A stretch of DNA of 64,000 nucleotides, from NCBI GenBank assembly GCA_030704615.1, contig CM060732.1, positions 22,444,001 to 22,508,000 of the forward strand, given 5' to 3'. A program made the translations under genes and the position numbers. Below the pieces are notes generated by a model that searched no databases, had not been told where the DNA came from, and saw only the letters and a program-made list of their open reading frames with translations. Positions 8,547 through 43,853 of this stretch are shown one piece after another (position 1 is the stretch's first letter; each line of letters starts with the position of its first letter). The stretch is from Takakia lepidozioides (Eukaryota; Plantae; Bryophyta).

Positions 8547-8559
8547 TTTCATCAATTGC

Positions 8560-11561: not shown

Positions 11562-14330
11562 TGCGGTGCTCGACGAGACCTCCTCGGGCAACATCACAGG
11601 ACCACGAGGGAGCATGCGAATATTCTTGTCAGCTCGCCATGAATCCTCTTCTCCACCAGGTGCCTCGTCAAGTCTTCGTCTCACTGGACGGGTATGAACA
11701 TCTCCTTCCAAATGTTGGCCTCTTCGAAACAATGGCGTGTCCCGAAGGCCCTCTCGCAAGGCCGCCGCCCACTTCCGAGGATTCTTCGATCTGGAGGCAG
11801 TCCGCATCAGCATTTCCTGCCTATCCGCCCCAAAGCCCCACTGTTTCCCTTTCAAGAACTCGTTGTATCTGCTTTGCTGCATAATTGACCTCACAATGTC
11901 CTCCGTTGTGGCAGTGAGGATGTCCACCAGATGCGCCGCAGAGGAGGTACGCCAGGAAGAGTGCACTGATTCGGCCATGTTTGTCGTGGGCATGTCGGTG
12001 TCGGAGTCGAGACACATTTCCTGCACAAGCACATGTTGAGGTTACAAGCAAGTTACAAATAATGTCAAGAATAATATTCAACGGGACGCGAATTCGTGCA
12101 ACTCACCTCCCGCATATAGTCGCCGAACTGGAGGAAACGATAATGCCACCATGCTAGCCAACTGACCATTGCTCCCTCGTCTGATTTCTTTACAGCACCT
12201 GACGATGTCCACCAAGCCCGTATACATGCAAACTGTGTCTCTGCATCATCCAAGGTGAGAGCGCGCTTCCACGCAAGACACATGGAACGGTGCTCCTCTC
12301 TGAAATCTGGCGCCACGAGCCTGGTTGTGTACTGCGAAAGGCTCTGCAGAAAATGAACCCACAAGATCTCTCCTTGCCTTCCATGGGAACATTGGGGTCT
12401 TGCCCGTACACCCTTCGGATGGCAGCCCAATTTGCTTGTGCGTTGTCCGCCATGAAACCACGGAAATTGGGAGGGGGCAATCCCGCCTTGGCCATCTGTT
12501 CGTTTTATTCCCTGCCAAAGAAGCATCTCCGATTGTGTGTCCTCTCCTTTCATCTCACAAATAACAATTGTCATTAGCATCCTGCAATGGGTGTCATAGA
12601 CATGTGCACCCATTGTCACCCACTGGTGATTTGTAATTCACTTGATATGGTCGAACATGACCCAACTATTTGACAAGTCCCTACTCGTCATCCTGTCGAC
12701 CAGTTTGACGCCGCTGCCAGGTCCACACGTCGACATTTTGAATACGAAACAACGATCTGCCTCAGTCCCTTGTCCTGGAAACCGACTTCCATGAATGTAG
12801 TCATATCCACATCGTCGCTTCACCTCCAGAATTGAGTGTATATCCGAGCCATGCCCAATTTTCTGTTTGCATGACACAATTGGTTTTTCGGACATTCGGT
12901 GAACAGACGTGGGACACCGACTCCAGCATGCCTCCATTTCCTTGTCATCGAGAGGAACTCTGTCGGAGCCGTCTTCCGACATAATTCTGGCCAACGCCAT
13001 CTTATGGGTGGCTTGGAGCTGTATCTGTTTGGGTTTGGCACCCGGTCTCAACTTAACCTCCTCCTGAACGAGCTGCTCTGCTCGTGGGCAGCCTCCCGTG
13101 AGTTCCCCCTCGCCAATTTTAACAATGGGAACCAACGTTTATGCAAGCTCGGGTGAGGTCAGGGAAACGGTGCAACACATAGAACTGCTTGGCATTACAA
13201 ACAGACATGCAGTGTGGTGGTTCTTTGCAATGCGCACACTTAAATGTGGAGTTCGGAACCTCTCCTGAGCTCGAAATGGTTGATGAGCTGTGCCTGTCCA
13301 ATTCGGTCTCGTTCATGTGACCTCTGGATTTAAAGTGGAAGCAAGTTGGGGAGAAACACTGCAATGCGCCCGCACAAACAACGTAGCACACCCGCACACC
13401 ATCGAGCATCTTCATGCTGGTGGTTTTTGGTAACGCACCAAGGATGACCATTATGTTTTCTATCCATATCTGTCAACATTCCATCCAGACGCCCTCGAGT
13501 AGTCCGCCCAGGAGGGAACTCAAAGAGATATTACCGTCGACGTCTGCGGGAAGGCATGTAACCGATTTTTAAACTTGCGAACTTGCTGTAGTCCAGCCCG
13601 GCCAGCTCCGAGCGGTGTCCCTCCGTGTGAAGCCCTCGCAGAATTTCAAGAATAGATCGAACTGCGGTGCTCGTGCTGGGAATATGACTCCCTTTCCATT
13701 GACGTCCATTGAGGACTTGCCTGATCTCCAGGACGATCTCGGAACTTCCATGACCTCGTCTGAGTCGGACAGGTTGTGAATAACCCGTTTCTCGCTCGTC
13801 TTCATTGATGGTTTCGGCTCTGGATTTACTTTCGTTGCGGACTTCTCTCTTTGAGGTACCCACTCTCTGATTCGCGGATTGTTTCGTTGAAGGCGCCAAG
13901 ATAGAAGGTGCATTTGGGGGCAAATGAAGTCCCCAACAGCCCTGTATATGACGATGTCCGATGGTGAAACTCGCCATTTCCCTGCCATTGCCGAAATCAT
14001 CGGTGGAGCACAACAATACTCTCGACACAAACGTCGTTTGAGTCCCTTCCTTTCCTCCTCCAAAAAAACCGACCCCGGTTTCAGGTGGTATCGAACGCAC
14101 AGATATTTCTCCATCACCCGGCAGATGTCCCCTCTGCACAGAAATGAAGCTCTATGCTCGTGAGGAGGGCAGTACATTGTAGCGCTCGGGTTTTCCGCCA
14201 TGGGAGATGTGCACACAAGACTGCCAGGATGGCGTGCGGACAAGCTCCCTGGTAGAAGGGGGATGCAACAATGGGAAGGAATGCGGTGCCGATTTGTCCG
14301 AGCGACGAAGCCTGATCCAAATCCAGGGAG
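11562..14330 (-). pseudogene. MULE transposase B, 3'-truncated at 11562 and frameshifted
   Basis: CAGALQCFSPTC...INVGSHC; WVMFDHIK; GFMADNAQ; ERSCGF; TTNMAESVHSSW (catalytic E); colinear with transposase A. Confidence 0.85.
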
Positions 14331-14499
14331 CCAACTATCTCAAAAATCCACAGTCAGAGTGTTAATGAACCTTGTCTCCGGAATGCAGCCCCTGGTCTTT
14401 GCGCAATAACTGCCAACAGTATGCAGTCAGAAAGTGGGGGGCCGTCCGGATGATGTCGGCTGAAGGGGAGAAGCCGACACCGTGTCGTCACATTACTAC

Positions 14500-15600
14500 C
14501 CCTGAATGGTAATTCGGAACCGAATATCCAACCGGGGCCGCACGGATGAAGTCGCCTCGGGCAGAGAGGCCGACGCCTGTCCGACAGAGAGCATCCCCCG
14601 GATGGAAATTCAGCGCCGAATTTCCATCCGGATCCCCCCAAAAGAAGTCGTGTCGGGGGGTCATGCCGAAAACTGGTCGACATAAAAACCTCCCCGGATG
14701 GAAAAACGGCGCCGAATTTCCATCCGGGGCCGTTCGGAGGCAGTCGGGGAGGGGGGAGAGGCAGGCACCTGGCCGTCACATTTCAACCCCCGGACGGAAA
14801 TTCGGCACCGAATATCCAACAGGGGACGCCCGGATGAAGTCGCCTCGGGCGGAGAGGCCGGCACGTGTCCGACAGAGAGCATCCCCAGGATGGAGATTCG
14901 GCACCGAATTTCCATCCGGGCCCCCCCAAAGGAAGTCGTGTCGGGGGGTCAGGCCGAAAACTGGTCAACATAAAAACCTCCCCGGATGGAAAAACGGCGC
15001 CGAATTTCCATCCAAGGCCGTTCCGATGCAGTCAGGGAGGGGGGAGAGGCCGGCACCTGGCCGTCACATTTCAACCCCCGGACGGAAATTCGGCACCGAA
15101 TATCCAACAGGGGACGCCCGGATGAAGTCGCCTCGGGCGGAGAGGCCGGCACGTGTCCGACAGAGAGCATCCCCTGGATGGAGATTCGGCGCCGAATTTC
15201 CATCCGGCCCCCCCAAAGGAAGTCGTGTCGGGGGGTCAGGCCGAAAACTGGTTGACATAAAAACCTCCCCGGATGGAAAAACGGCGCCGAATTTCCATCC
15301 GGGGCCGTTCGGATGCAATCGGGGAGGGGGGAGACGCCGGCACCCGTCACATTTCAACCCCCGGACGGAAATTCGGCACCGAATATCCAACAGGGGACGC
15401 CCGGATGAAGTCGCCTCGGGCGGAGAGGAAGGCATCTGTCCGACAGAGAGCATCCCCCGGATGGAAATTCGGCGCCGAATTTCCATCCGGGCCCCATCAA
15501 TGGAAGTCCGGTCGGGTGGTGAGGCCGAAAACTGGACAATTTAAAAACCTCCCAGGATGGAAAAACGGCGCCGAATTTCCGTCCGGGGCCGTTCCGATTT
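14500..15600. repeat. Tandem array with about 288-bp unit (about 4 copies), three palindromic cores per unit
   Basis: ATGAAGTCGCCTCGGGC recurs at 14546, 14834, 15122 and 15405; cores are GGATGGAAATTCGGCGCCGAATTTCCATCC and variants. Confidence 0.95.
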
Positions 15601-15704
15601 CCCTTTAGCAGTCGAGGAGTCCATGAAAAACGTGTCTAAAAGTGGACTTCAGCCACAAAACTAACAGTTTACTGTGTTTTTCTCCGAAAAACCAAGCGGC
15701 CACT

Positions 15705-17030
15705 CTCAGAATTACCTGCAGGATGGTAATTCGGCGCTTAGACTTACCTGGCGGATGGAAATTCGGCGCCGAATTTCCATCCATCCGGGCTTCGAATTAC
15801 CTGCATGACGGAAATTCGGCGCTTGAAATTACCTGCAGGATTGAAATTCAGCGCCGAATTTCCATCCTGCGGCGCTCCAAATTACCTGCATGACGAAAAT
15901 TTGGTGCGCCGCCCTACCTGGCAGATGGAAATCCGGCGCCGGATTTCCATCCATCCGCGCGCAGAATTACCTGCGTGACGGAAATTTCGCGCGCCGCCCT
16001 ACCTGGCGGATGGAAATCCGGCCCTGAATTACCAGCATGACGAAAATTTGGTGCGCCGCCCTACCTGGCGGATGGAAATCCGGCGCCGGATTTCCATCCA
16101 TCCGCGCGTAGAATTACCTGCGTGACACAAATTTCGCGCGCCGACGTACGTGGCGGATGGAAATCCAGCACCGGATTTCCATCCATCCGGCTCCGAATTA
16201 CCAGCCTGACGAAAATTTGGCGCGCCGCCCTACCTGGCGGATGAAAATCCGGCGCCGGATTTCCATCCATCCGCACGCAGAATTACCTGCATGATGCGTG
16301 CCGCCCTACCTGGCGGATGGAAATCCGGCGCCTGATTTCCATCCATCCGTGCGCAGAATTACCTGCGTGACGGAAATTTCGCGCACCGTCCTACCTAGCG
16401 AATGGAAATCCGGCGCCGGATTTCCATCCATCCGGCCCTGAATTACCAGAATGACGAAAATTTGGTGCGCCGCCCTACCTGGCGGATGGAAATCCGGCGC
16501 CGGATTTCCATCCATCCGCGCGCAGAATTACCTACGTGACGGAAATTTCGCGCACCGCCCTACCTGGCGGATGGAAATCCGGCGCCGGATTTCCATCCAT
16601 CCGCGTGCAAAATTACCTGCGTGACGGAAATTTTGCGCGCCGCCCTACCTGGCGGATGGAAATCCGGCGCCGGATTTCCATCCATCCGGCTCCGAATTAC
16701 CAGCATGACGAAAATTTGGCGCGCCGCCCTACCTGGCGGATGGAAATCCGGCGCCGGATTTCCATCCATCCGCGCGCATAATTACCTGCGTGACGGAAAT
16801 TTCGCGCGCCGCCCTACGTAGCGGATGGAAATCCGGCGTCGGGATTTCCATCCATCCGCGCGCAGAATTACCTGCGTGACAAAAAATTTGCGCGCCGCCC
16901 TACCTGGCGGATGGAAATCCGGCGCCGGATTTCCATTTATCCGCGCTCCGAATTACCTACAGGATGGAAGTCTGGCGCCGGATTCCCATCCTGCAGCGCT
17001 CCGAATTACCTCTACGTTGGAAATTCGGGG
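15705..17030. repeat. Tandem array with about 85-bp unit, each holding a 30-bp perfect palindrome
   Basis: Repeated GGATGGAAATCCGGCGCCGGATTTCCATCC; AATTACC recurs at about 85-bp spacing across 16525-16870. Confidence 0.95.
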
Positions 17031-17949: not shown

Positions 17950-20900
17950 ATGACAGAGTGACGACGAGCCCGGCACGCTGGTGGTATCATCGACAGCTCC
18001 AACTCATCGCATGTTTGAATCGCCCAACTTGGGGCGAGAGGGCAAACTTAAACCTTTTGTTGGTAGACGGGAGGACCTGCAGCGAGAGTACGACAGAATA
18101 GGCATTGGGCAGGTTGGTGCAGGCGGCATGGCAGGTGAAGGGCGTGAGGACGTGAGGACAGCAGATCCGGCAATGGAGGTTGTTGATGCACATGCAGTAG
18201 GGCCCGCCCACGCAAAGAAGAAGAAGAAAGCTAAGCACATGCAATCCCCGGCGAGAGAGCCGTCACGGGCTGCGGAGGGGGGAGTGAGCAGTGCGCGCAA
18301 GGGTGTCAGTTCACCTCAATCAAAGGTGGTCGTCCTGGAGGGCTCCCTTGCTGCTAGCCCTAGTAAGAAACAGAAAGCCCATGAGAGGGCAAAAGAGAGG
18401 GCAAAAGAACAAGCGAGACAAAATGCTAGCAAGGAGGAAAGAGAAAAGGCCACTGAAGAGGCCAGGGGTGCCCAAATGACAGATGCCAATGTAAGCGAGG
18501 GACGCACAGAGACGGTGGATCCCTCCAAGACACCACAAAGAGGCAGTAACACACTGATTAGACCATCGCGGGCAAGAGCAGCCCCTGCAATTACCCATAC
18601 GGTGGAGAGTGGAGGAGAGGAAAGAACACCAGAAAGAGCACGGATTGTGCCAGTTCGAGGTGAAGCCGGGGAGAGGGCAGTACAGACGGGGAGAGTGCTC
18701 GAGGTGGTTTCGCCGGTGGCTGACCATGTTGAGGAGGACGACAGGGAGCTTTCTGACCAGGATGACATCCTCCCGGACATCCCCAGGCCCCAAACCCGCA
18801 GCATACAGGCTGGATTTGGCGGTCCTGGTGGGCTGCCGGAGAACCCCTCTGCAGCAGACGTCATGTCGGAGGCGGATATAAAGTTGGCCGCTGCCAAGAT
18901 GTCGGAGGCAACCCACAGCAACATTGGCAAGGTGCTGGGGGCATGGTGTACCCGGCCAAGCTTCGGATTCCCCTTTGCCGCTTGGTGTCATTGCAGGTGG
19001 TGAGACCTGCCCTCCCATGCGATATCGACAAGCTGAAATTCTCTTTCCGGGATGGATATCGAATGGGGTCTGCCGCGTTTTACGTTTCCATTGAGAACGA
19101 CCACGGAGCTTCCCGTGCCCACACTTCCGATGAGGTGGACAAATGGGGTCCCCATTGGCAAAGGCGAAATGAGGAGTTCGAGAGAACGATTGCTACTGAT
19201 CCTCTTTTCCAGCACTTGTCCGGTAAGATGTTTTACATGTGGGACGGCAATCATCGCCTCCTGGCATGGATGGAGCACATAGCCGAAGCCCACCCCAACG
19301 ACCTCGATTGGCATTTCGCCGTGGAGTGTGTTGTGCTGAAGGTTGCGGGGCCCAAAGATCGCAGTCTTCTCAAAGCTGCAATGGCGGACATCAACTCGTA
19401 AGTTACAACACCTCTTGCTTTTGGACCCATCCGATTGTAAGTCATTTCATTGCGAATCCTCATATTTGTTGAAAATTCCCATTTCAGTATTGTTTGATGG
19501 AAATGTGGCATTGCAGGGTGACTGAGAATGCCTTCATTGCCACCAACTTGTCCCATATGCTCTTCCGAGTGAAGGATGTCGGGAAGGAGGGGGTGCAAGA
19601 GTTTGCCAATTCGCTCAGTGCCGACCTCCTGCGCAAGTCAGAGGCAAAGGCAGACAGAACCTGGTATAGGCTGAGCATGGACGCCATGGTGGAGTACATA
19701 TTTCGGGTAAAGCTCCTCACTGTTTTGTTGAGCTAATGTGTCTCTCCTCCCCCAATAGAAGAAAAAGTGTTGAGCAGGATCTCTAATCTTATGTGCGCAT
19801 TCTTGACAAACGAAAATTCAGCAGGATTTGGCACATGCGCAGAGGTTCTACATGGAGTCAGAGGAGAAGAATCTAACCCTCCCGGCACTCGAATCGTATC
19901 TCAAAGTTGCGGAGGCCAGGGCCCGCATAAAGTACAAGTCGCGGATGGTAAAGTACGTGGCCATAGCTGATCCCGCCCTTGGTGCCGACTTTCTGGTGGA
20001 GGTGGGGAAGCACTACTCCCGCGCTCTGAGGCCCACGATGACATTGGAGAAGCTCCATCGTCTAGCCACATCCTGTGTGGATGCAACAGAAAAGGTGATA
20101 CATTCTTAACCAAATTGTGGTGGCAACAACTCGTTTTTGTGGTGTTTGGCGCTTACGAATATGCTGGGTGGTTGGACAGACCCGGTGGCTCCAAATCTGG
20201 AATGGTTCCCAAAGTACAAGGGACATGTGGAGCTTCCCCAAACCGGACAAACTGTCTGACCCCACATTCGACATGTGGATGAACCGCATGACATGGTGGT
20301 TTTAGGTACTTCCCCACGCTTCGTTTGGCACTTCTACTCTTGTAGGGGGTGGATTCATTGTATTTTTTGAGGAAAGCGATCTGATGGAGAATCTCCACAG
20401 GTGACGACGAATGCGCAAGAGCAGCTGGACACACAAGCACATCAGTTCAAGATGGAGATTTTTCCTGCAGCAGAGAGCCTACGCGACTATGTGACGAGGT
20501 ACTTTCTGCTCTACAAAACCGACCTATTCTTTCGGGAGATACCCCATGCCCGCCGGAGCCACGAGTTCACCGACCAGCCGAACGCGGACAAAGCAGCAAT
20601 GCGCCTTCTGTACAGGTACATACGCGATGTCTTCCTTTCAAGTCCTTACATTTCAGGATGTTAGAGGCCTCATGTGGCGCATGAAAATTGGTCTTTGGGA
20701 AAATGGCGCCAAATTTCCAGTTCAGGGCTCCGAAAATGGCTAAGTCCCTAGGGTGCCTGGCCCTAAACTGGAAATTCGGCGCCATTTTTCCAGTTCAAGG
20801 CCATATTACCGTTCTGGGACTTAGCCATTTTCGGGCGGGAAATGGGAAAATGGTGCCGAATTTCCAGTTCCGGGCTCCCAAGATGGCTAAGTCCCTAGGG

Positions 20901-22801
20901 TGGCAGTCACCGAAAACCGAAATTCGGCGTCATTTCTCCATTTCTAGGCCCAGTCAGATCCGCCCCAACCTGGGAAAATGGTGCCGAATTTGCAGTTCAG
21001 GGACCTCATTGTGTTTTTCATGAATGCAGGTACTGCAAGTTCTCCCTTTTGGAGAAAGGTCATCTGTCTTTCGAGCCACCATTCTTCCTGGCATGGAGGA
21101 ACCCTGGGGCTGACTCCATGTACACTGACGATATTGTGAAGGAGTGGCATCTGGAACATTTGCGTGATTGCCCTTGGTATGTGGACCTTCTGCCCGGCTC
21201 GCTCGACCCATCCGAGTTTCAATTGAAACTGGATGCTGAGGCCTGACGAAACTGGGCTCCGCTGCCTCCGCTGGGTGCAAAAGAGGCAAAAGCGCTTGCG
21301 AACTCCAGGAAAGCGGCAGAGCTTGCTCAGGCAGGAATTCAGGAGAAATTGAATGAAAAGAATAAAGGCCAAAGGAAAAGGACAAGGAAACAGGTGAGTA
21401 CAGTAACACCCAAAAAATAGAAAACCATTGGGGCATCGGAGGAGGCGCAGGAGGGGACCCAAGGGAGTGACTCGGACGACGACTTTGTTCAAGGTCCTGC
21501 GACTGCTGTTGCTGCTACCAAGTCACCGGTCGTCCGGGTTCCCAAGTCAGTTCGGGGTGGGACTGGCTCTGCCAAGAAGTTGGCATTTGAGGGTGAGCCT
21601 ACACGGCGGTATTCGGCGGTGATGTTTACGCACAGGCCAAAGCTAGAACCTCCAACCATCATCCAATGCGTCAATGAGAGCTTCCTTGACGCTCTCGCTG
21701 CCAAGGCGAAGAAGGTGGCACACAGCAAGTCTCTGGCGGAGCAGAAGGGGAAAGCCAAGAAGAGGGCTGCCGGTATAGAGCCTAAAGACACCCCTGGTTT
21801 TGAAGCCATGATGGAATTCTTCACGGCTGTGAGCACGGATTGCAAGAGCACTCGGGGGGGGGGGTTGAGGTGGAGAGAGCTTGCGATATGATTCTCCTCG
21901 ACATTCCAGATGGGGAGCTGCTGGAGGGCCTGGATGGTGTGCCCACCTGGAACAGGTTTACTGAGGACTACTGGAAAGCCGGGTTTGGGCTAGCAGGGAT
22001 GCTCCTGGATGACGGTGGATGTGTGGTTGTCCTTTCCACAAGAGGGAAGACCACAGAGAATGCGGTGGCAAGATGGACACCGAAAAGTGTCACCCCGGTC
22101 CTCCTCATAAAATGGTTCTGCATCAATACACAGGGGTTGCGAACAGAGGGCCAAAGTGTAAGTTATCAATCCATTGCATTCACCTCATATTGTGGTGTAT
22201 CTAAACTAGATCCCGGAGTTGATCCCTCTTTTGTTGGATGTGCAGACATTGGTGTTTGAGGCATATTGCTTTGTGAAGAGAGGGTCTACGTTCAAATTCT
22301 GCAATGACAGTCGTCTTGTTGATGCCGCTATGGACCCTGTTACCTACGATGTCCTCTACAACTATGTGCCCCACTTCAGTATGTCGAAGGACACAAAGAC
22401 AGGCAAACCGTGGCGGTACAGCCGGACCCGGGAGCCCTGCTTTCATCCAAACCCTCATGGAGACGTGCTCGGATGTCCAAGGGCGGATTCTGGACCTCAC
22501 ATGCGGCACGTGTAAGCCTTCACGTGCTCAGTTTGTCCCCTGGCCCGATTGCAATTGCATGCTGCAAGCTATTAACCGCCCGCTTTGTTCCTCAGGTGCT
22601 TCAATGTGGGCAGGGACGTTGTCCGACAGGCATGTGTTCGCCTTCGAGCCAGATACTGCCCTCCACAACCCGGAACTTGCAGCGGCTGAACGTCTGCCAA
22701 AAGAGGAAGAGGCATCCTCGGAGGATGAGGAAAAATCCGAGAAGGAGCAGGGGGAGGAACAAGTTGGGATCGAGGCCGAGGAGCCCCCGGTGTACGAGTG
22801 A
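17950..22801 (+). pseudogene. Multi-exon gene: disordered N-terminus, ParB/Srx-like domain, helical region, beta-class amino (N6A/N4C) methyltransferase-like domain
   Basis: FYMWDGNHRLLAW near 19243; CDMILLDIPD near 21900 (motif IV position); then AFIQTLMETCS..GRILDLTCGT/GASMWAGTLSDRHVFAFEPD (motifs X, I, II after IV, i.e. beta order); GT-AG introns such as 20616-21029 and 22511-22595; some frameshifts. Confidence 0.72.
20690..21000. repeat. Intronic cluster of GGAAATT-CGGCGCC-type imperfect palindromes
   Basis: GGAAAATGGCGCCAAATTTCCAG, CTGGAAATTCGGCGCCATTTTTCCAG, GGAAAATGGTGCCGAATTTCCAG and others within intron 20616-21029. Confidence 0.8.
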
Positions 22802-22927
22802 GTGGTCGCATTGTAAGTTGCCTCCAGATTTCGTGAGGCACCTCCCTTCGCTCTCTTATTTCATTGAAAACCCTTTCTGCTTCTGCTGGTATTGACATTC
22901 TTGAAGTGGATTTGTTCTTACTGTAGG

Positions 22928-23386
22928 ATGTCAAGTACGGCAGGAGGGACGTCTACACCGGAGTTCATGGGCAGGAAGAACGTGCCTTTTTTTGCCAGGG
23001 GGGATTTCATGCCTAGTCCAGAAAGGGACTACATCCTTCCTACTTATGCTGCCCGGCTTGCTTCAGTGTCCATTATGAGGTGTTCCGAACCTAGTCGTGT
23101 ACAGCAGATTTTAGATGAGGGAAGCCTCAAGAAAATGAAGATGAGGGAGGAGGCAGCAGCTATTAGAGCCCGTCAGGCTCGTAGATTTGTCTTGGATTCT
23201 GCTAAGGAAAGTGGGGGAGAAGAGGCAGAAGATTCCCAGGAGGTGAGGTGGACAGTCCCCCAAGGAGAGGACGGCATTTTTGAGAGGCATACTGCAACCG
23301 ATGCATCACAGAGCTCGGAGGATGGGGGGGATGAGGGGGATGAGGAAGAAGGAGGGCCAAGTTCCTCGGAAGGTGTAGGAGAGTAG
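22928..23386 (+). CDS. Small accessory ORF of the Mutator-like element, function unknown
   Basis: NVPFFARGDFM...EVRWTVPQGEDG is conserved in a diverged paralog at 62108-62485. Confidence 0.6.
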   Translation: MSSTAGGTSTPEFMGRKNVPFFARGDFMPSPERDYILPTYAARLASVSIMRCSEPSRVQQILDEGSLKKMKMREEAAAIRARQARRFVLDSAKESGGEEAEDSQEVRWTVPQGEDGIFERHTATDASQSSEDGGDEGDEEEGGPSSSEGVGE

Positions 23387-32039: not shown

Positions 32040-35000
32040 CCTCAACAATATGTCATTGGTCTGGAACTCGCTCGCATGACTCGCTTTCTGACTGATGATT
32101 AGTCTCCTCCAATTTAGCGCGCGCCTTCATTGCTTCGGCGGCAGTAATTCTCTTAGTGCTATTCCTTGTCGTATTTTTTCGTGGAGGCATTGTCCACACA
32201 ACATTGTTCATGTGGATCTATTTAGGAGGATTTGACGAGTTATACTCCCAAAGTTTTGACCAACAGTCCCTATACCTTTCCAAGTCTGTTCGGTTACCAC
32301 CTTTTCTCGGTCTCCACCACTCCACGTTCACCTTCTTAAAATTAGGATCCTCCCCTTCGTGGATCACGTTAGATATTGCCCCCCTTATCCAGACTGGCCA
32401 CGTACTTGGGTCATGAGGGCGAACGAGCACAAAAAATCCTTTCTCAATATCCTTGAACGGATTCAAGGATATTCTTGGTCGCTCACACCTCGGGTCACAG
32501 TAAGGTTCTAGGATTTCATCCTCTTCTTCCACATCTGGCACTATATCTCCTTCAGGGAGCTTGGGAGTCCCTTCAGGATTGGACTTCCACATCTTCAGGC
32601 TATTGTTTGTTGGAAGCCAATCCGAATCAGTAGCGGACTTCTTGTACTTCATGACGGGCCAGCCCTCCGCATCCTTAAAAAAGCGGAAGACGTGCATCTG
32701 CAAAATCCCGACCAACGCCTCCTTTCCATCCAGAATACAGCCCTTTACAAAATTCTTGAAGTCGGGAACCTCCTGAATAATCTGTGGAATGAACTACAGA
32801 TCTTGCGAGGTCATAAATGACCTCATCAAATCCGAAAGAATGTAGGTGCTTCGTTCCTTTAGCTTCTTCAAAAGGTAGCTGAAGAACCCGTCGATGTCCT
32901 CATGGGTGTGTCCGACCATTAGAAACCCTAGCTGGATCTCTTCAAAAACATCTTTGGCAGTCAGGAGGGATAGAAAAGCAAGCATCCATTTGTTCTTATT
33001 GTCATTCGCGGAGTTGTCCATTTGCAAGTACAGTCTTCTCGGAAGTGGACGAACACCATGTTTGTCTTCCGGCCTGCAGGGTTTAAGAGCATCCAAACAT
33101 CTCGATTTACCTCTTAAAAGTGATTCGAAAAACTTGTTTTGAAGTCGGTAATCGAAAATGTTCCTGGACTCGCGACAGGTTGGCTTCTCCAGCTGGCGCA
33201 GGCAACGTGCCAAAGAACCAATTGTAAAGTTTGAATTTCCCTTCCACAACTCAAGATAATACTGACCGTAAGCTCCATCACCGTGTCCGTGCGTGACCAT
33301 TCCCGTTAATGAAACTGGAAGCTGACCAAATCCAGAAATCATCTTGTTTGGAGTCTGGAGCCTTGGAATAGCTATTTTCCTATGATCCATTTTGTCGTGA
33401 ATAATACAGAGAAACTCCTCCGGAATCATAACAGACTCATTCCTCCAGCTATGGTACAGTCTTCTGCATGACTCTTGGTGCCTCAAATGTTTATCAAGCG
33501 CTCGTTTGTGTGTCACATGTTCTGCACTTCTCTTGACAGACTTTTTGATCAGGTCCTTTAACATCTCACACTCCGTGCACTTCGCAAATGTGCTCCCAGT
33601 TTTATGAACCTCCACATTAGGAAATATCCGACTCCAGATGCGGCTAACAGCCGACTGCGAGACTCCTTCCAACCCGAAAAGTCTGTTCGTCTGTTACAAT
33701 AAGGAAGGGTCAAGAAATGAACATCCATTGGATAGTGGAGGTTCATGAAACTAGAACCATAGTCGAAAGAGACAAAATCGAAGGGTGGGTCATCCACATT
33801 AAATCAGAAAAAACTTCTAAGAATGAAATTGAAGAATGGAGATTTCATACCTTGTTGGATTCGTCTCGTATTCGCTTCCAGTTCATTTCAGGTGGTAAGA
33901 CTCTCAAAGTATCCCTCATTCCCTCCCCAATGCATCTTGTCTTATGGGGCATGAGGTCAGTATTTCCGTTGATAATGGACATAATGTTACCCTTTGCCTA
34001 AAGCGTCCGTGGGCGTGGCGGCCTCTTCACTCCACGGTTTCCATGGAGACTTGACAACCAACCCTGTTTACTCAACTTTTTTGTACTCCATGTATGTAGA
34101 CCTGCCAATTCCATGAATTGTCCACCAAGCAGTCTCACAAACATCTACACCCTCAATCGTAACGTATGCCCTGCGAGAGGTCCCTTCCAGCATGTGAAGT
34201 CGTTTTGAAACATTTAGTCCATGTTCTCTCCTCTCATCAAAAGTGGATCCCCAAAACGAAGTACGGATAGCCAAGGTTTTCACCAATCAAAATATTGACA
34301 GCAGTGAAGTCTACAGCAAGGTTTGCTGCTCACGGACCGGACTTCTTCCAGAGTAAGATTCTTCATTCTTTTTTTGGAGTGTTCCAAATCTCAATCCCTC
34401 TACTTCCTCGTAAAATGCCGATATGCCGCTTTCTTCACACCTGCCTCGTGATCTTCATACAAGATACTGTCAGAAGATCTAATAAAATTCTATCATTTGA
34501 GAGTAGTCTCCCACTTTCCAAAAGTCGTGTTTTTATTAAAGGCCATTTTACAAGAGACATCAAAGATCCAGATCCTCCAGAAAGTATTCTAGTGACAAGA
34601 ACTCCAACATCGTCCTCTCCCAGTTTGTCATTGAGGATCACCTCGTCCGGAATGCAGGCTTGAATCCTCCCCTCAAACAGTGCACCCCCATCATTACCCA
34701 ACAGTACGCACTGCAAGTTTCTCCAGTTGTTTCTTCCAAGTCCTCCGCTCGGATTCTCGGAACTCTTCGATGGTATGTGGTTTGATTCATCCTCGTCAAC
34801 GTCAGAATTTTTGGTAGTATACCTTCTCTCCGGCGTAAAATCAGGATTCATGTCATGCCCTCCTTGATACTCGTTATTCTCCGCATGAACTTCGCCAACA
34901 TTCCACACTACCGGGGTCCCAATGGCCTCCTTCAAGGTGTTAGCATCCATATGTCCATAAGGAAGAGGACATAATGAGTTTGCTTCATCACAGGAGATGA

Positions 35001-36419: not shown

Positions 36420-39400
36420 GTCTAAGTATTTTAGAACACCGGATCCACGCTGGATACACCTACGGCTGGCCACTAAAAAGTCAGGGGATATGGACTCGGC
36501 CGCGTGAAGTGCCATTGCTTCGGCATAAACAGGCAGCAGAAAATTGGAAAGGGGGCTGTCGAAAACAGACTCGCCAGAAATGATTGTATCTCCTGAAGAT
36601 CCACCACTGCCTTTCCTGAAAGACAGCCTGAAAAAGTTATTACTGTAGCTTTGATGTTATCGAGAAATTGAGTATGACTCCCAAAGAGGGTTTAGCACTT
36701 ACTCACATGAAAAGTCGTTGTCGACCTGCTTATCTTCGGGATCGTCATCATTTTGAATTTGAATCCGATCAGTCTGTGTGCCTGAAGTGGAGCCAGACAA
36801 AAGGGGGAGGAGCACTGTGTTGTAGAGGTCAGAATCACCCTCCATGCCAAAAATGTTTCTTCCGCCTGCCTTGCATGCATGGTAAGTTGCTCCTGCACCA
36901 GACAGGAGAACATGAACAGTTTGGAGGGGGGGATTTAAGCAGATGAAACTGTTGAAAGGAAACCAATTCGGAAGGGAAAAAACGAACCTGTGGACACAGA
37001 AAGATCGACCACCCGTGCAGAGCGGTGGCTGCATGACTCCAGCAGTATTTGCATGAACGCTGGGGACTTTTCCTTTGCACCTCTCCAGGGAGTGCCATCT
37101 GGTCTCTTCAGAGTCTGACTGGACTGCATGAAGTTGTACAAAATGTCATCGACATGGGGCTCATAGGGGGGGTTGACGAAACAACCCTGGTCAGAAATCT
37201 CAAAGCTGCGGATGGAGGATGGTGTCTTTGAGGTGCGAATCCTCCGCAGGCAGATCGCCTCGAACATCCTCGTCTGCCAAAGATAGCAGGTTAGTGTGGT
37301 AAACACAATCTATAGTGGAAGTGTGTACATCGGCTATTCAGAACTCAGACACAAAAAAATCATAAATCGGTGATGATCGGTGTCGATCATAACACATTCT
37401 ACTAGAGTGGAGCTGCAGAGAAAATTGAAACTCATGATCAAAGCACAAGCAGAAGGGAGATGACATACCAGCTGACCAGGGAAACCCCCTTTCACAAGGT
37501 AGAGGCTGTTCACACAATTCCATGTGCGCAAAACTTCAAACCCTGAAGACTTGAGGTATGATGCCAATGCCCGACGACTATCATTGTCACATGACTGAAA
37601 AAGCAGAAGTGTCCCTGCATCAGAGAGGAAGTTGTTACAGAACCCGAACACCCAACTCCAGTAGTTGTCCTCGAATTTGTTCCAGCCTGGCGTCTTGCCC
37701 TTTGGAAGAACTTCTGGCACAGCCTGGCTATCCGGGATGTCGAGAATGACAATGTCGGCCGCATAAGTTTTCTGCACACCGCACACGGAGGTGGGACCTG
37801 TGCTCACCTGCAACAGACATGTTTTTTATAAGAACGATGGCAAGATTGTTTTCAAAGAACGAGACTGAAATACTGCCAACGAAACTTTCAGAGAAAAAGG
37901 AAAGAAACTGGAATTCTCACCAGATTGAGGAATGAGATTATATTGTCCCAGGTAGGGGATGGCACCCCAGTGTATCCTCTCTTTCGACTCTGCATCATCG
38001 AAAGCCAACCCTCATTAACAATTTTCATCTCTCCTGCTGAATCAGAATGGGAAGGGTGTGGCTTGGCATGGAACACGCACTGAAGAGTGCGGGTATATCT
38101 TCCAGCAGTAAAGTCCTGCCCACTCTCCATCTCTTTTTCATTCTCCTTCCCCTTGTCTTTTTCCTTCTCTTTGGACTTGTCTTTGTCCTTTGGCTTTGCT
38201 GGTGAGATGGCTATGACATCAACAGCCTTGTCTTTTGGTTTGCGGCCCGCCTTCTTTCCCTTCTGCGGCGTTCCCTGAGCATCAGGCTCCTTGGCAGCCA
38301 ATGTTGCTATGTTTTGTTGATACTCTTCGTCAGTCAAAGGCGCCAGCATCTCAGCGTTATTGTTCAAGTATTTCATATGCTGTTCTTGAAAGGTCGTGTG
38401 CTCAGGTGGGCAGTCAAGGTACCACCCACAGTCTCTGAAGTGAGAAGGACTCCAGTCCTTCAATATCCCTGCAGTATACATGGTTGGATCGTTTGCAGGG
38501 TCCGACCACATGTCAAGATAGTCGGGAATTCCGCTCAGGTGATTTCCTTCCATAAGCACATATTTCGTGTACCTGGAAAAAGGAGATAAATCCCAACCCA
38601 CAAAAGCGCTCAGTGAGTAAGATGCAAGTAGAACAGAATGAAAAAAACATAGATTGAAATGGCTCTGAGAACTGCTCCAAGGACCTTTCAGGACCACACT
38701 ACTGCTCTAGATATGAATGTCGTCAACGCCATTCAAAACATTCCATTCAATGATACTGTAAATACACCCTAATCCAGGTGAATGCAAATTATCGTTTAGG
38801 AATGACACAGACATAGAAGTGAATGTCGTCAACGACATTCACTAATGAAGCCAAATTATTACTTAAATGAAGCAAAATCACAGGATGGAAATCAAAAAAT
38901 CGAGTAAGGAACCCTCCAGGAAAACTCAATGCACATTCATAACGAACATATCACTGAGGACCTCACAACATCACTGTATGTGAATGGCGTCAACGCCATT
39001 CACAAAAATACCAAAACGAAACCAATTACTTAGCTCCCAATCCATGTAAATTCAATTTGTCGCTGTTGAATAATACAGACACAGCAGTGAATGTTGTCAA
39101 CGACATTCACTTTGGATTTTTCATAACAGAGCTTATCAAGCCTCCAGATTCCTCGCAAGAGGCAAAAACAATGCAGAACAACTGAATGTCTGCATTGACA
39201 TTCAGCAAAATGAAGTGAGGAACCCTCACTGTAACCTCTATGGACATTACAAAAATTTACATAACTCTGAGGACCTCTCAACAACTCCGTATGTGAATGT
39301 CGTCAACGCCATTCAAGGACATTATCAATTCTAATCAGGGACACTATAATTGCACCCTTAGATCCTAACCAGGTGAATTCATATACTCGCTTAAGAATGA

Positions 39401-40087
39401 CTCAGACAAAGAAGTGAATATCGTCAACGACATTCAATCTGGATCTAAGATTGCAATCCATATGAAGCCACATTTTTTCCCAAAAAAAACAGTAGAGTTT
39501 CAAGTATGACATTGCACCTCTCGCATCATGGCCCACTCTCCTCCAACCTGACTGTCAAAGTCGTTGGACCGTAAAATGTTACCATCTTTGGAGAACTCCC
39601 GGAAAAAACAGTATCTCCATGTGAGACCTCTCCACTTCCTTATGTATGCCTCCAATGACATTTGGGGAGGGGAAACAATCGAAATGTTCAGGTCCTTCAA
39701 AGTCTAATCCAGCACAATGACGGCGCGCTTTTCGAGCTGCAAATAGTATATTTGTCAGAATTGCAAATAAGATACTCATCACATACTTGAAGAGAAGAAA
39801 ACAACATGTTTGAATACACACCTGACTCCAAAATGTAGCCTTGTGGAGCCAGTTATCAAACACCAAATCACTGATTCCTTCCACCTTTGTGCCAGGCTGT
39901 ATGGTGCTCTTTGGGAACTGATTCAAGTCCTTTACTGTTTGATCTGAGTTCCATATCTCCAGCCACCTTATTTTTGTTTGTGGGTCGACCATCGATATGG
40001 CCAGCCGGTGCAATTTCTCCTGCTGCATCTTCCGGATGCACATGCTTGTCATAGTGTGTTTTGATTTGCTGAAGGAACTCAGGACCA
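36420..40087 (-). pseudogene. 3' half of second ParB-MTase gene (amino-methyltransferase-like domain)
   Basis: ADIVILDIPD near 37735; PWRGAKEKSPAFMQILLESCS..ARVVDLSVSTG/ATYHACKAGGRNIFGMEGD; exon-by-exon similarity to 19830-22800 (EKLHRLA, RYTKY..GNHLS, RDCGWY). Confidence 0.72.
38714..39437. repeat. Intronic dispersed array of palindrome TGAATGTCGT-CA-ACGACATTCA
   Basis: About 7 copies near 38714, 38820, 38981, 39088, 39183, 39294 and 39415. Confidence 0.85.
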
Positions 40088-40172
40088 TGTCGTGCGCATA
40101 CGTATCGCAACACAACTACATCGCTGTCCAAACCACACCACACATACATGCACAATAAAGTAGTCTACCACA
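40088..40172 (-). repeat. Terminal 85-bp segment A (copy of the LTR U3 start)
   Basis: Identical to 40534-40618. Confidence 0.95.
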
Positions 40173-40176
40173 ATAG

Positions 40177-40618
40177 TGATAAGAAAGCTAAAAGGACACA
40201 CACTCCCAACACAAGAAATATGAAATCCATCGCTATCACTCTTTAAAACAGAAGTCGAGCCAGGGGCACCCCAAGCTGTGGGGACTCCACCCCACAACAA
40301 CCTACACTCCCATCATGAGCACACTCAGTCCTAAACGATGCAGGAGCTCGGTCGCGCAGGCTCAACTCGAGAGAGATGAGCTGCGCGACTGCCGCTCTCG
40401 TGAAGATAAGACGGGTCAGGTGTCAAACTAAACTTGACACCTGATTTAACACTTGACCTAAATCCAAGTGTTAAATACAAATAACTAGCTTTATTCTAGC
40501 TAGTTTCACACTGTGCTTATTTAACTTGACAGCTGTCGTGCGCATACGTATCGCAACACAACTACATCGCTGTCCAAACCACACCACACATACATGCACA
40601 ATAAAGTAGTCTACCACA
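40177..40618 (-). repeat. Full 442-bp LTR (A + GC + B), preceded by a polypurine tract
   Basis: Minus strand reads TAGGGGGGCG-AT-TGTGG...TTATCA; internal palindrome GACAGCTGTC at 40528-40537; B part matches 51550-51904 with about 2 mismatches. Confidence 0.92.
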
Positions 40619-40877
40619 ATCGCCCCCCTAGCTGGTGGATAGGTCCCTCTACCTCCAGATAGCTACAAGACGTAATAGCCATAGCCGTACTAAGTCCTCT
40701 ATCACTGTCCCTATCGTACTCAAACTCTATAGACCAAGAGGCCGGGTACAAGAGTAGCCCCATCGTTAGTCGCCGTCTTGCAATCTGTGAACTTGAGCCA
40801 GGACTTTGTGTATTCAAGGTCTCCTGTAGCTGGGCCTTGCGTTGCTTGTTAGCCTTCCATGGTTGTATCCACTCCCA

Positions 40878-42188
40878 CTATCCAATGCATCGTGGACATA
40901 ACCAATCCCCATCCAGAACCATCTCAAGAGGTGGAGTCAAGCATCCCATATGCCAACCTCTAGAGCATCGATCACACAGCAGCATGGTGGTTGCCCCTTT
41001 AGCAGACCCACACAACATGCACCTCAAACCTGCAAATACCACTGCCAGGTTTGGGTCAATCCTGCCATCGACATTCGGAAGGTGACATGGCGCACAATTA
41101 CGCACATGGTCCTTCCAAGTTATGCCATCCCGACCCTCCAAGACCAAGACGCTTGAGGGCAAGACCTCTCGAACCCTCAAAATAACACGTCCTGCAGTCA
41201 CATCCAGGGTCGTAGGAGCAGTCTGCTGCAGATAGACATAGTCACCAGGGTTGAATCTCCGAACCCCAGGACGATAGCCCCCACCACGTATGGTAGCATA
41301 CCTCAACGTATCACGGTGTTGTGCAATGGCAAGGTTCTCGAAAGCCATGGGCATGACTCTCTTGAACAACTCTGCACGCTGCTCACATGCACGTGCCCAC
41401 ACGTCCGGATCGTCAAGGTTAAGAACTGTAGCAGCTTCTCTGCGAATGGATGTAGGCAAATCCGGCTCTCGGCCAAAGAGAAGAAAGTATGGTGAGAAGG
41501 AGGCAAGTGATGCTTGCTTGCTGAACCTGTAGCCCATGGCTAACCAGGGTAACTGAAGGTCCCAATCTCCTAGGTGTCCCTTCTGCAAGCCATACTTGCG
41601 CAAACCCCTCTTTACTGTCTGAACAACTCTCTCTGCCAAGCCATCGGCCTCAGGATGATCCCGAGAAGTGGTGCGGTGGTCTATCAAGGCCTTGTCACAC
41701 AAAGCCTGAAACTCCCCCAAGAACTCTCTCCCTTGGTCCGTGAGTACCTCAGCTGGAGCACCGAATCGGCTAAGCACACAATCCAGGAATGCATACGCAG
41801 CTCCCTCACTAGCCTTATCAGGCAATGGAACCAATTCAATCCACTTGGAGAAGTGCTCCACCATCACCAACACGTACTTGTTGTGGCGCATGGTCAGTGG
41901 CAACGGCCCTGCGAAGTCAAGACTCCACCTGTAGCCCAATCCCATGATGGGAAGAGGGTGCAATTGTGGAGTAGGGGCGTTGAATGAAGCACGCACCCTG
42001 TCACACACCATGCACCTAGCCACAAATTGTTGCACCTCTGTGTGCATACCACGCCACCAATACTGCCCCTGCAGTAGACTATGAGTGCGTCGCACCCCAA
42101 AATGCCCCAACTCCTCATGGGCATGGCGCACTAACCGTGCCCGCTGTGTTGGGTGAGGCACAATCCTCACTCGACCATCCTCCCACAC
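40878..42188 (-). CDS. Integrase with C-terminal PHD finger (pol C-terminus, separated from RT by one TGA)
   Basis: HEELGH...CMVC; DFAGP/TDQG/GLAER DDE core; CMLC...LLCDRCSRGWHMGCLTPPL...WLCPRC (C4HC3). Confidence 0.96.
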   Translation of the reverse strand: MWEDGRVRIVPHPTQRARLVRHAHEELGHFGVRRTHSLLQGQYWWRGMHTEVQQFVARCMVCDRVRASFNAPTPQLHPLPIMGLGYRWSLDFAGPLPLTMRHNKYVLVMVEHFSKWIELVPLPDKASEGAAYAFLDCVLSRFGAPAEVLTDQGREFLGEFQALCDKALIDHRTTSRDHPEADGLAERVVQTVKRGLRKYGLQKGHLGDWDLQLPWLAMGYRFSKQASLASFSPYFLLFGREPDLPTSIRREAATVLNLDDPDVWARACEQRAELFKRVMPMAFENLAIAQHRDTLRYATIRGGGYRPGVRRFNPGDYVYLQQTAPTTLDVTAGRVILRVREVLPSSVLVLEGRDGITWKDHVRNCAPCHLPNVDGRIDPNLAVVFAGLRCMLCGSAKGATTMLLCDRCSRGWHMGCLTPPLEMVLDGDWLCPRCIG

Positions 42189-43853
42189 TCAGAGCAGGTG
42201 TGTCCCTTCCCACTTGAACCTCTTGGCTCGTTGTAGGATCCGATCCCTCTCCTTGGCAGTCACAGTGGCTGCCGTGTCTCCAGTGCGGAGGTAGTCCAAC
42301 ACAACTGAATCCTCATGTATATCTTTGGCGCCACCTTGCTCATTGCTGGCCTCAGGGTCCTCAGACACTTGATCTACAGTCATCCCTGTTGCAGGTCCAA
42401 CCTGGCCTTCCGCTGCCAAGATACACAGAAATGCAGATGCATGCCATCCGGGCACCATCTCCTCGTCCGTCTCACCATGCCACCGAGCTCCAGTGTCATC
42501 CTGCTGGCTCGTGCATGGATTGCGACTCAACCCATCTGCATTGCGATTGACCAAACCCGGTCGATGCACCACCTGAAAGTCATACTCTTGAAGGATGAGT
42601 GCCCACCGTGCAAGCTTCCCCGTAAGCTTGTCTGACTCCATCAACCACTTGAGTGGTTGGTGATCCGTGACAAGGGTGAAGAGATTGCCATATAGATAGC
42701 ACCTGAAGTGTGCCACGGCCCACACTGCAGCTAAGCATTCTCCCTCATATGAGCTATACTTAGACTCTGCAGCATTGTTCGAGCGGCTAGCATAAGCCAC
42801 TACGAACTCTCTTCCCTCATCATCCACCTGTGTGAGCACCGCTCCAAGCCCCAGCATGCTCCAATCTGTATGCAGCTGAAAAGGACGCCCCCTGATAGGT
42901 CGTCTCAAGATGGGCGCCGAGGTCAACCTCGCCTTGAGCTCTTGAAAAGCTTGTTCTTGCTCATCTTCCCACTGCCACTCCTGGTCCACCTTGGTCAGCT
43001 TGGTTAGAGCCTTTGCAATGGCACTGAATCCCTTAACAAACCGTCTGTAATAGTTTGCTAACCCCATGAAAGCTCGAACTCGGCTCACATCCGTGGGGCG
43101 TGGAACCTGTGCAATGGACTCTACCTTAGTCTGCTGTACCCCCAATCCTCCAGGATATATCATGTGACCCAGATACTCAATCTGGTTGTGGAAAAACTTG
43201 CACTTGCCCGGATGTAACTTCAATCCGTGCGTCCTTAAGCGCTCAAATACCCCCTGAAGGTGTCTCTCATGCTCCTCCACCGTAGCACTAAAGATGATGA
43301 TGTCATCTATGTAGCACCGAGCAAACTCCACCCCTGCTAGAATCCTGTCCATGACTCTTTGAAACTCAGCGGGAGCGTTTTTAAGCCCAAATGGTAAGAA
43401 CCGCCACTGGTATAGGCAATCCTTCCCGTGCTCATTGATCCCCCAGAATGCCGTCTTTTGCTTATCCGCCTCCTTGATCGGCAACTGGTGATATCCGGAT
43501 CGTAAATCCAACGTGCTAAAGACCTTGGAATGCCCAATGGCATCAAAGATCTCCTCTGGTGTTGGCATGGCATACCTATCGGACTTGGTCTGACGATTTA
43601 CAGGCCGGTAATCACCGCACATACGTCTCTCCGTCCAATTGCCATAGACATCCTTCTTAGCTGGCATCACTGTGGCTGAAGCATACTCTCCACCAGAGAG
43701 CTCCACCAAACCTGCCTCCCAGAGATCTTGAGTCCTCATCTGAATCAAAGACCTCTCCATGTCACTGTATCTATAGGGTCTCCGAAAGATTGGCGTGTCA
43801 GTGGCCAACTCAATACGGATCTCTTGACCCTTCAGTGCTCCCAAGTCCTTCAA
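42189..43853 (-). CDS. Reverse transcriptase and RNase H
   Basis: RMCGDYRPVN, LDLRSGYHQ, LPFGLKNAP, YIDD, LHTDWS, YSSYEGECLA. Confidence 0.97.
   Translation of the reverse strand: MKDLGALKGQEIRIELATDTPIFRRPYRYSDMERSLIQMRTQDLWEAGLVELSGGEYASATVMPAKKDVYGNWTERRMCGDYRPVNRQTKSDRYAMPTPEEIFDAIGHSKVFSTLDLRSGYHQLPIKEADKQKTAFWGINEHGKDCLYQWRFLPFGLKNAPAEFQRVMDRILAGVEFARCYIDDIIIFSATVEEHERHLQGVFERLRTHGLKLHPGKCKFFHNQIEYLGHMIYPGGLGVQQTKVESIAQVPRPTDVSRVRAFMGLANYYRRFVKGFSAIAKALTKLTKVDQEWQWEDEQEQAFQELKARLTSAPILRRPIRGRPFQLHTDWSMLGLGAVLTQVDDEGREFVVAYASRSNNAAESKYSSYEGECLAAVWAVAHFRCYLYGNLFTLVTDHQPLKWLMESDKLTGKLARWALILQEYDFQVVHRPGLVNRNADGLSRNPCTSQQDDTGARWHGETDEEMVPGWHASAFLCILAAEGQVGPATGMTVDQVSEDPEASNEQGGAKDIHEDSVVLDYLRTGDTAATVTAKERDRILQRAKRFKWEGTHLL

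Follow-up and report, generated by a model that had tools for sequence, protein, structure and literature searches.

ParB-like plus amino-methyltransferase-like genes as putative transposon cargo in the land plant Takakia lepidozioides

Several kinds of transposon carry genes that act on their own chromatin: C5 methyltransferases in retrotransposons, TET/JBP proteins in the KDZ elements of fungi and, as known since 2025, ParB-like proteins in DNA transposons of algae. The closest described case is Sola1-1_Ec32 of Ectocarpus, a 21.5-kb Sola1 element that encodes, opposite its transposase, a protein of 1104 amino acids (aa) in which a ParB-like domain is joined to a methyltransferase for the N4 of cytosine (N4C) or the N6 of adenine (N6A) (Genome Biol 2025, PMC12477816). 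The same paper reads the algal proteins as performing N4C/N6A methylation of their own element, and it cites green-algal cases with ParB-like and methyltransferase parts (Iyer, Abhiman and Aravind 2011). In Bostrychia, ParB-like cargo lies beside inverted-repeat arrays and is common to Plavaka and Mutator elements (bioRxiv 10.1101/2025.02.11.637652; Curr Biol 2025). Iyer et al., who surveyed the adenine methylases of eukaryotes, list no land-plant clade of the ParB-methyltransferase kind, and our literature search found no paper describing such a gene in land plants. Here we describe two diverged genes of this kind in a stretch of 64,000 nucleotides (hereafter, the window) from Takakia lepidozioides (contig CM060732.1, positions 22,444,001 to 22,508,000).

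The window is eukaryotic DNA crowded with transposons, and its self-comparison reveals a nest of insertions. It contains two homologous spliced genes, at 17981-23386 on the forward strand (copy 1) and at 36702-40087 plus 51905-53147 on the reverse strand (copy 2). We find it somewhat probable that both are decayed accessory genes carried by large cut-and-paste transposons in seed-free land plants. An intact protein is predicted to run from a low-complexity N-terminus through a ParB/Srx-fold domain with a DGNHR motif and a conserved middle region to a methyltransferase domain of the beta class, in permuted order. An earlier note on this DNA had described a spliced gene with DGNHRLLA followed by a methyltransferase-like domain in the order IV...X-I-II, a strongly diverged homolog with a similar exon series, and DIPD at the DPPY/SPPY position in both, and in each of these points it read the sequence correctly. 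Copy 1 carries WDGNHRLLAW (DGNHRLLAW at 19243-19269), LLDIPDG (DIPD at 21900-21911), PWR..SPAFIQTLMETCSDVQGRILDLTCGT, the motif I DLTCGT at the end of the exon closing at 22511, and RHVFAFEPD; copy 2 carries DGNHR at 52587-52601, DIPD at 37730-37741 and DLSVSTG inside 36956-37276. When the copy-1 frames were searched against copy 2 with tblastn, the matches were colinear for the ParB exon (E 1e-36, 44% identity), exon 2, exons 3/4, exon 6, the DIPD exon (E 1e-12) and the exon of motifs X and I, with 30-44% protein identity exon by exon, values that place the resemblance far beyond chance.

Set beside Sola1-1_Ec32 by description, these genes share with it a ParB-like and an amino-methyltransferase domain, probably in one protein, a putative location inside a DNA transposon beside the transposase (on the opposite strand in the case of copy 1) and a proposed role in binding and modifying the element itself. 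They differ from it in the host, a seed-free land plant, in the partner of copy 1, which is Mutator-like, and in the catalytic loop, which is D-[I/V]-P-[E/D]. None of the algal proteins was recognisable among the relatives of the ParB exon or among 132 matches to the methyltransferase part, searches in which no algal query was used. With PAG2 and PAG3 of the Plavaka elements (Bostrychia; Mutator homologues in Chondrus) the likeness lies in a ParB-like N-terminal domain in transposon cargo, in tandem inverted-repeat arrays nearby and in cargo common to different transposon superfamilies; however, PAG3 combines its ParB-like domain with a 2-oxoglutarate oxygenase and PAG2 combines an N6A methylase with SET, whereas the window genes probably fuse ParB and methyltransferase. 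Bacterial and phage ParB-methyltransferase fusions, CcrM, DpnA/M1.HpyAVI, M.RsrI and M.MboIIA (PF01555) provide parallels for the fold, for the IV...X-I-II order and for a ParB-type N-domain, but DPPY and DPFxGSGTT are canonical there and replaced here, and the window genes are spliced, eukaryotic and apparently transposon-borne. Marchantia MpDN4MT1 and rotifer N4CMT are likewise beta-class amino-methyltransferases of bacterial origin in eukaryotes; they belong to the host, have a canonical (T)SPPY motif and are of demonstrated activity (PMC8885841), and we found no sign that either is transposon cargo. Marchantia DN4MT1 was ruled out as a member of the present family on its TSPPY motif and on the Marchantia preprint, which mentions no ParB domain. 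By analogy, then, the family is a land-plant variant of a design already in print for algae and no new kind of system; what is new is its occurrence in a land plant, a catalytic loop that is altered yet conserved, and evidence that the family is still expressed. The earlier note's idea of a shuttled module that targets the transposon carrying it has likewise been published for algae (PMC12477816; bioRxiv 10.1101/2025.02.11.637652).

We used the exons of the window copies singly and took whole domains from uninterrupted open reading frames (ORFs) of relatives or from database proteins. Single window exons of both copies gave no Pfam match and nothing in a PDB sequence search, and since they are too short to score alone, the methyltransferase-like domain was scored on the frames of relatives. 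The frame of L007, an ENA contig uninterrupted from motif IV to motif I, matched PF01555 at 25-26 bits (E 1e-5 to 2e-5), its best match (L007:14270-14887) reaching 25.9 bits (E 1.1e-5), just below the gathering threshold of 26.7 bits; other matches scored 25.1, 20.8, 19.3 and 15.7 bits. The whole domain is present in the proteins P0063 (596 aa) and P0085 (758 aa, from Ceratodon purpureus), with PF01555 at E 4e-4 and 0.015, respectively, and in the locus L006 motifs X-I-II fall in one ORF (PF01555 E 1e-3; DpnA in the PDB, E 0.007). An exhaustive search with the L007 frame returned 132 family members and zero bacterial enzymes. A family profile of 92 aligned pieces, to which the window exons contribute separate rows (alignment A4), matched CcrM over the whole domain among PDB sequences (E 1.2e-5), followed by DpnA, EcoP15I Mod, MboIIA, RsrI and N4C enzymes; all ten matches are beta-class amino-methyltransferases. 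A structure model of P0063:312-565, a relative from a moss sample, had a predicted local distance difference test score (pLDDT) of 90.1 and a predicted template modelling score (pTM) of 0.88, and Foldseek placed it next to CcrM (E 5e-13, TM 0.69), then M.BceJIV, MboIIA, M1.HpyAVI, RsrI, rotifer N4CMT and PvuII, with the ~45 chains after CcrM all beta-class or Type III Mod enzymes. Profile and model together establish the beta-class amino-methyltransferase fold, in the permuted order IV...X-I-II, for the family, and the window exons align into it. The beta-class domain put forward in the earlier note is thus supported, on relatives, by profile and by structure alike, and neither approach left the fold unsupported.

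Within this fold the active-site motifs are altered. In the alignment of the family profile with CcrM, the family stretch DLiIaDiPeglp falls on DLIFADPPYNLQ, column for column on DPPY. Over 51 sequences, the first position of motif IV is D in 42, the second I (22), V (11), Y (6) or L (5), the third P in 46 and the fourth acidic in 45 (E 27, D 18); the position of the stacking tyrosine holds one F and one H, and DPPY never occurs. A conserved G-L-P-V-P follows directly, so that the family loop, D-[I/V]-P-[E/D]-G-L-P-V-P, does not fit the canonical (D/S/N)-P-P-(Y/F/W). Motif I of the family is D-x-[T/S]-A-[S/A/G]-T-G, most simply D-x-T-A-S-T-G. Motif II still closes with its acidic residue (E in 8 of 12 rows; FEPD in copy 1, MEGD in copy 2), which is conserved, as is a PWRG-REK block ahead of motif X. 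On the cofactor side, then, motifs X, I and II survive in altered form. The departure of motifs IV and I from the canon, which the earlier note had read in the two window copies, therefore holds across the family. Since the altered loop is conserved in ~50 diverged sequences, it is under selection and the domain does something; since it is never DPPY, methyl transfer is in question, and ordinary N6A/N4C chemistry by this domain appears doubtful.

It could nevertheless be argued that the protein is an active DNA amino-methyltransferase which writes N6-methyladenine (6mA) or N4-methylcytosine (4mC) on the transposon, that D-[I/V]-P-[E/D] is a working variant of DPPY and that the ParB part only targets the enzyme, a proposal we regard as rather unlikely. 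None of the matched solved enzymes is without the aromatic residue, and motif I has lost its first glycine. Partners of the same fold with degenerate loops, such as METTL14 and the partner subunits of the ciliate MTA1c, are inactive. In favour of activity, the altered loop is strongly conserved and not randomly decayed, motif X, the region of motif I and the terminal acidic residue of motif II are kept, every one of the closest structures is a DNA N6A/N4C enzyme, and the algal proteins have been published as N4C/N6A methylation (PMC12477816). Because the aromatic residue is lost, we judge from the sequences that shielding of the DNA without methyl transfer is slightly more likely than marking.

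Turning to the first exon, a word search with the ParB exon returned 48 relatives of exon size, nearly all of them unnamed contigs from metagenomes or read archives, plus one protein of the liverwort Riccia sorocarpa. In their alignment (A1), D-G-N-H-R, IPLCR and other positions are conserved at 90% or more. A model of the copy 2 ParB exon (52449-53147, reverse strand), built with A1, had a pLDDT of 82, and above 90 over residues 80-230. The top ~40 Foldseek matches to this model all belong to the ParB/Srx superfamily (ParB, Noc, KorB, PadC, Srx, SbnI, SerK). VIA-align ranked first the domains that bind cytidine triphosphate (CTP) at the N-terminus of Caulobacter, Myxococcus and Bacillus ParB, of Noc and of KorB (Z 9.3-8.1, root mean square deviation (rmsd) 2.1-2.7 Å over ~90 residues), the best being residues 42-137 of Caulobacter ParB (Z 9.3, rmsd 2.1 Å, 94 residues), and lower down came sulfiredoxins and serine kinases (Z 5.3-6.6). 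In the model, DGNHR spans the end of a strand (179-183) and the start of a helix (185-198); set against the phosphate-binding motif G-x-x-R, which is GERR in ParB, it has N in place of E and H in place of the first R, a residue equivalence assumed by motif alone. The ParB-like domain of the earlier note is thus supported as a ParB/Srx fold by the model, by Foldseek and by VIA-align, while the profile check with Pfam gave no match. PDB sequence searches with single window exons and with the A1 profile did not match any ParB. In a language-model search, the exon (52449-53147) lay nearest to fungal DUF3723 clusters (score 0.95), which Pfam did not confirm; this domain may have a distant relative in fungal DUF3723.

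A ParB-like fold need not imply an epigenetic role, since DG-x-HR motifs occur in ParB-like nuclease domains too, and the domain could be a nuclease or a transposition cofactor that helps to cut or pair the ends of the element. In four loci (window copy 1, L006, L007 and, in Ceratodon, L008) the gene and a transposase gene are arranged head to head, which favours such a function. We consider it very improbable, as structural comparison ranks CTP-binding ParB, Noc and KorB best, and not nucleases, and as it leaves the conserved methyltransferase-like domain unexplained.

The ParB exon, exons 2-5 and the methyltransferase exons occur in the same order, on one strand and colinearly in seven loci whose proteins differ by 45-75%. 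In the L006 lineage, the ORF P0031 spans the ParB domain into exon 3, the Ceratodon gene models span exon 3 to the C-terminus, and spliced contigs connect exons 5 and 6 as well as exons 6, 7, 8 and 9 with one another. For these reasons the ParB and methyltransferase parts are likely, from their sequences, to form a single gene. The contigs derive from the public runs X1-X4 of the source organism: those of X1 and X4 have five introns removed, and we classed them as RNA on this absence and on the automatic label 'RNA?', whereas those of X2 and X3 retain introns. As the X1-X4 contigs are 90-99% like window copy 1, they stem from other copies of the family, and near-identical copies elsewhere are transcribed and spliced as modelled. 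In Ceratodon purpureus the family is annotated as 'hypothetical proteins' (M758_9G084500, 1G310400 and 6G158200); in the locus L008 (GCA_014871845.1, 8730-9541 and 10001-14794), ParB exons lie unannotated upstream, beside a Mutator-like ORF. A complete annotated protein in which ParB and methyltransferase domains occur together was sought: among the 132 matches of the exhaustive search no protein exceeds 758 aa, and the three Ceratodon models, which start in exon 3, do not decide between one gene and two.

The splice sites of copy 1, all of whose exons lie on the forward strand, were read from the genomic sequence and from the X1-X4 contigs. Exon 1 (17981..19397, from ORFs, with the donor GTAAGT at 19398) encodes a K/E/A-rich low-complexity N-terminus and then the ParB/Srx-like domain, assigned by fold (18943-19397, DGNHR at 19243-19257). 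Exon 2 (19517..19706) is homologous to copy 2 at 52363-52163 (E 5e-13), and exon 3 (19822..20094), which reads ..VAIADPALGADFLVEVGKHY.., is matched in L005 and L006 and at the point where the Ceratodon gene models begin; for both, the splice sites come from the sequence. Exon 4 (20180..20305, TRWLQIWNGS..) is matched by tblastn to copy 2 at 40013-39828, and a spliced X4 contig links ~20302 to ~20398, skipping ~95 nucleotides (nt) after 20302-20305. Exon 5 (20401..20615) is defined by a spliced X1 contig which skips 414 nt with GT..AG ends, from 20612/20615 to 21027/21030. Intron 5 (20616..21029), removed in this contig, contains direct repeats at 20696-20950 and a palindrome match at 20770, and its short repeats are related to the palindrome found upstream of copy 1. 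Exon 6 (21030..22157, from three-frame translation, the X1 contig being contiguous over 21027-21820) encodes a conserved block and a K/E-rich linker in addition to the first half of the methyltransferase domain, which includes the DIPD of motif IV. The X1 contig joins 22157 to 22246 (88 nt, GT..AG) and 22510 to 22595 (84 nt), which delimits exon 7 (22246..22511), with the target-recognition part, the PWR..SPAF block of motif X and motif I. Exon 8 (22596..22812, from sequence and contigs) carries motif II and an acidic tail; 114 nt with GT..AG ends are removed at the joint from 22812 to 22927, and the frame continues into the last exon, exon 9 (22927..23386, an ORF reading ..YILPTYAARLA..), whose conserved C-terminal block is also found in L003, L005, L007 and P0085.

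Copy 1 is dead, with three frameshifts and at least three in-frame stops. At 18936 it is missing one base, where DNA contigs of other copies have an extra G that joins the N-terminal and ParB frames; the poly-G run at 21853-21863 shifts the frame and is 1 or 2 bases shorter in other copies; and near 22430 there is an extra base that is omitted in runs X1, X2 and X3. The stops are a TGA at 21244 (CGA in the spliced X1 contig), a TAG at 21418 and a TGA at 22799-22801, in frame with the conserved last exon. The residue after DLTCGT is C in copy 1 and G in the spliced contigs of other copies. Splicing or programmed events were ruled out as the source of the frameshifts, since contigs of other copies, both DNA and spliced, do not have them. 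The window also contains part of a third copy, in which just the last exon is recognisable, at 62108-62566 on the forward strand (match 62165-62530, 47% identity to 22927-23386); it adjoins a Gypsy border, and the copy-1 palindrome occurs at 62055.

In copy 2, which lies on the reverse strand throughout, the ParB/Srx-like exon is an ORF at 52455..53147. Exon 2 (52163-52363) and the 5' half of exon 3 (~52100 to 51905), together 51905..52363, were located by tblastn and read ..FGKQLRIVDPGLG up to the border of a Gypsy long terminal repeat (LTR) retrotransposon (40088..51904, reverse strand). This 11.8-kb insertion has reverse transcriptase, RNase H, integrase and PHD domains, LTRs at 40175-40531 and 51548-51904 that are 99.4% alike, and a 4-bp target duplication (ACCA); the coding sequence of copy 2 reads ..IVDPGLG on one side of it and GPEFLQQIKTHYDKH on the other. 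Beyond it, the 3' half of exon 3 is fused to exon 4 (39828..40087; two overlapping ORFs in different frames, and tblastn), with a frameshift in exon 3 after ..THYDKH. The methyltransferase-like half (36702..38577), defined by ORFs, tblastn and rows of alignment A4, comprises a conserved block (38404-38577), the DIPD exon (37505-37780), the X-I exon (36956-37276) and the motif II exon (36702-36899, GRNIFGMEGD). With the Gypsy element inside exon 3 and the frameshift, copy 2 is dead as well and, both being broken, a state that the earlier note had not recorded, neither window copy is able to make the protein. The Gypsy family is represented by three copies or parts (40088-51904, 6650-11561 and 62486-64000), has an integrase ending in a PHD finger, and has two ORFs between gag and reverse transcriptase with weak matches to C5 DNA methylases (PF00145, E 0.0085 and 0.049); an extra 87-bp repeat, at 40088-40174 and 40534-40620, flanks the LTR of the copy at 40088-51904. 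Elsewhere in the window, an A+T-rich tandem array with a strong GC skew occupies 28956-30728 (397-bp period, copies 95-97% alike).

Head to head with copy 1 lies a transposase gene at 11604..13660 on the reverse strand, homologous to an intact ORF of 1229 aa in L007 (E 5e-71), as well as to ORFs similarly placed in L006 and L008, and cut at its 3' end by another Gypsy copy. The language-model neighbours of the 1229-aa ORF are SWIM and Mutator-like element (MULE) clusters (0.92-0.85), and it has a weak IS256 match (E 0.015); neither the pieces of the window transposase nor the intact ORF of L007 gave a Pfam MULE match. We therefore call the neighbour of copy 1 Mutator-like and not proven Mutator. 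A second Mutator-like transposase gene at 3207-6270 (reverse strand) is 72% identical in DNA to the one at 11587-13063 and has no adjoining ParB-methyltransferase gene; a Gypsy copy lies between the two, and a palindrome of the same motif occurs at 2900. Downstream of copy 2, on the same strand, is a DUF7869 gene (32602..33672, reverse strand; PF25273 E 3.8e-35), 42% identical to a DUF7869 ORF in L007. No Mutator-like ORF occurs within 9 kb upstream of copy 2, and self-comparison of the window revealed no usable terminal inverted repeats round either copy.

The earlier note had assigned the two genes to two transposon superfamilies, the second Sola-like. Part of this stands: copy 1 is beside a Mutator-like gene and copy 2 beside a DUF7869 gene, which the earlier note had read as the Sola-like transposase. 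DUF7869 could not be tied to Sola, though, and in L007 a Mutator-like ORF and a DUF7869 ORF both flank one ParB-methyltransferase gene, so that two carriers cannot be told from a nest of elements. The picture of two superfamilies could be an artefact of nesting, with the gene belonging to one Mutator-like lineage and the DUF7869 genes to separate neighbouring elements. The co-occurrence in L007 and the nested state of the window itself speak for this view, which we hold to be quite possible, if short of probable. Against it, the order of methyltransferase end followed by DUF7869 ORF on the same strand recurs in two loci with proteins ~42% identical, copy 2 has no Mutator-like ORF upstream over the distance given above, and in Ectocarpus the element with a gene of this kind is a Sola1 (PMC12477816).

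Between the transposase gene and copy 1, at 14438..16969, lie arrays of a palindrome of 22-30 bp (GGAAATTCGGCGCCGAATTTCC, with the variant GGAAATCCGGCGCCGGATTTCC), with 24 matches against 0 expected and tandem periods of 96/288 and 85 nt; one more copy is the match in intron 5. Copy 2 has a different palindrome in the matching intron. We screened L006, L007 and L008 for palindromes of 18 bp with at most one mismatch and the same core at least three times. L007 has its own palindrome (core CTCGGATCCGAG) in 7 copies, at 3836, beyond the transposase ORF, at 11485-12209, where five lie in an intron of the ParB-methyltransferase gene, and at 15783, after the methyltransferase exons; the intron in question differs from the repeat-bearing intron of the window copies.

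If the window genes are remnants of transposon cargo, their intact relatives would be predicted to recognise the element's own palindromes, which are arrayed beside the gene and in one intron and are specific to each lineage. Palindrome binding may act as a putative ParB-type clamp, gated by a nucleoside triphosphate, which would concentrate the methyltransferase-like domain on the element. There the domain would either mark the element's DNA, or occupy and shield it without ordinary N6A/N4C transfer; in both cases host silencing might be blunted or transposition helped. A number of findings weigh against this proposal. Bacterial ParB reads its palindrome through a helix-turn-helix domain, and the two regions modelled here are the first-exon domain of copy 2 and the methyltransferase domain of a relative. 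PF02195 of Pfam did not match at E up to 1 in either window exon or in 50 members of A1, and NCBIfam gave nothing. L006 and L008 fail the screen for repeated palindromes, which L007 alone passes. Among the RNA molecules and contigs, none joins the ParB exon to the methyltransferase exons, and in the three Ceratodon models that begin in exon 3 the ParB exons lie 0.5-1.3 kb upstream of the annotated start. As to the catalytic motifs, motif IV has neither the second proline nor the aromatic residue found in every matched solved beta-class enzyme, and motif I keeps just the second glycine of DPFxGSGTT.

A bolder version would have a re-tooled amino-methyltransferase, loaded at palindromes by a ParB-type clamp with a nucleotide switch, write a mark other than 5-methylcytosine (5mC) or block silencing by 5mC and histones, while protein and sites co-evolve lineage by lineage; this we regard as a speculative and clearly unlikely idea. 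If that idea is true, embryophytes would possess a self-marking system encoded by transposons. For annotation, the present analysis means that family members listed as 'hypothetical proteins' in Ceratodon are genes of transposons, and that their models lack the ParB exons lying upstream. The lineage-specific palindromes beside and inside the gene offer ready-made binding substrates, and the altered yet conserved loop poses a sharp biochemical question, for the domain is a pseudo-enzyme that has been conserved or else a methyl-transfer site of a new kind. With this family, the ParB-plus-methyltransferase design extends to mosses, liverworts and their relatives.

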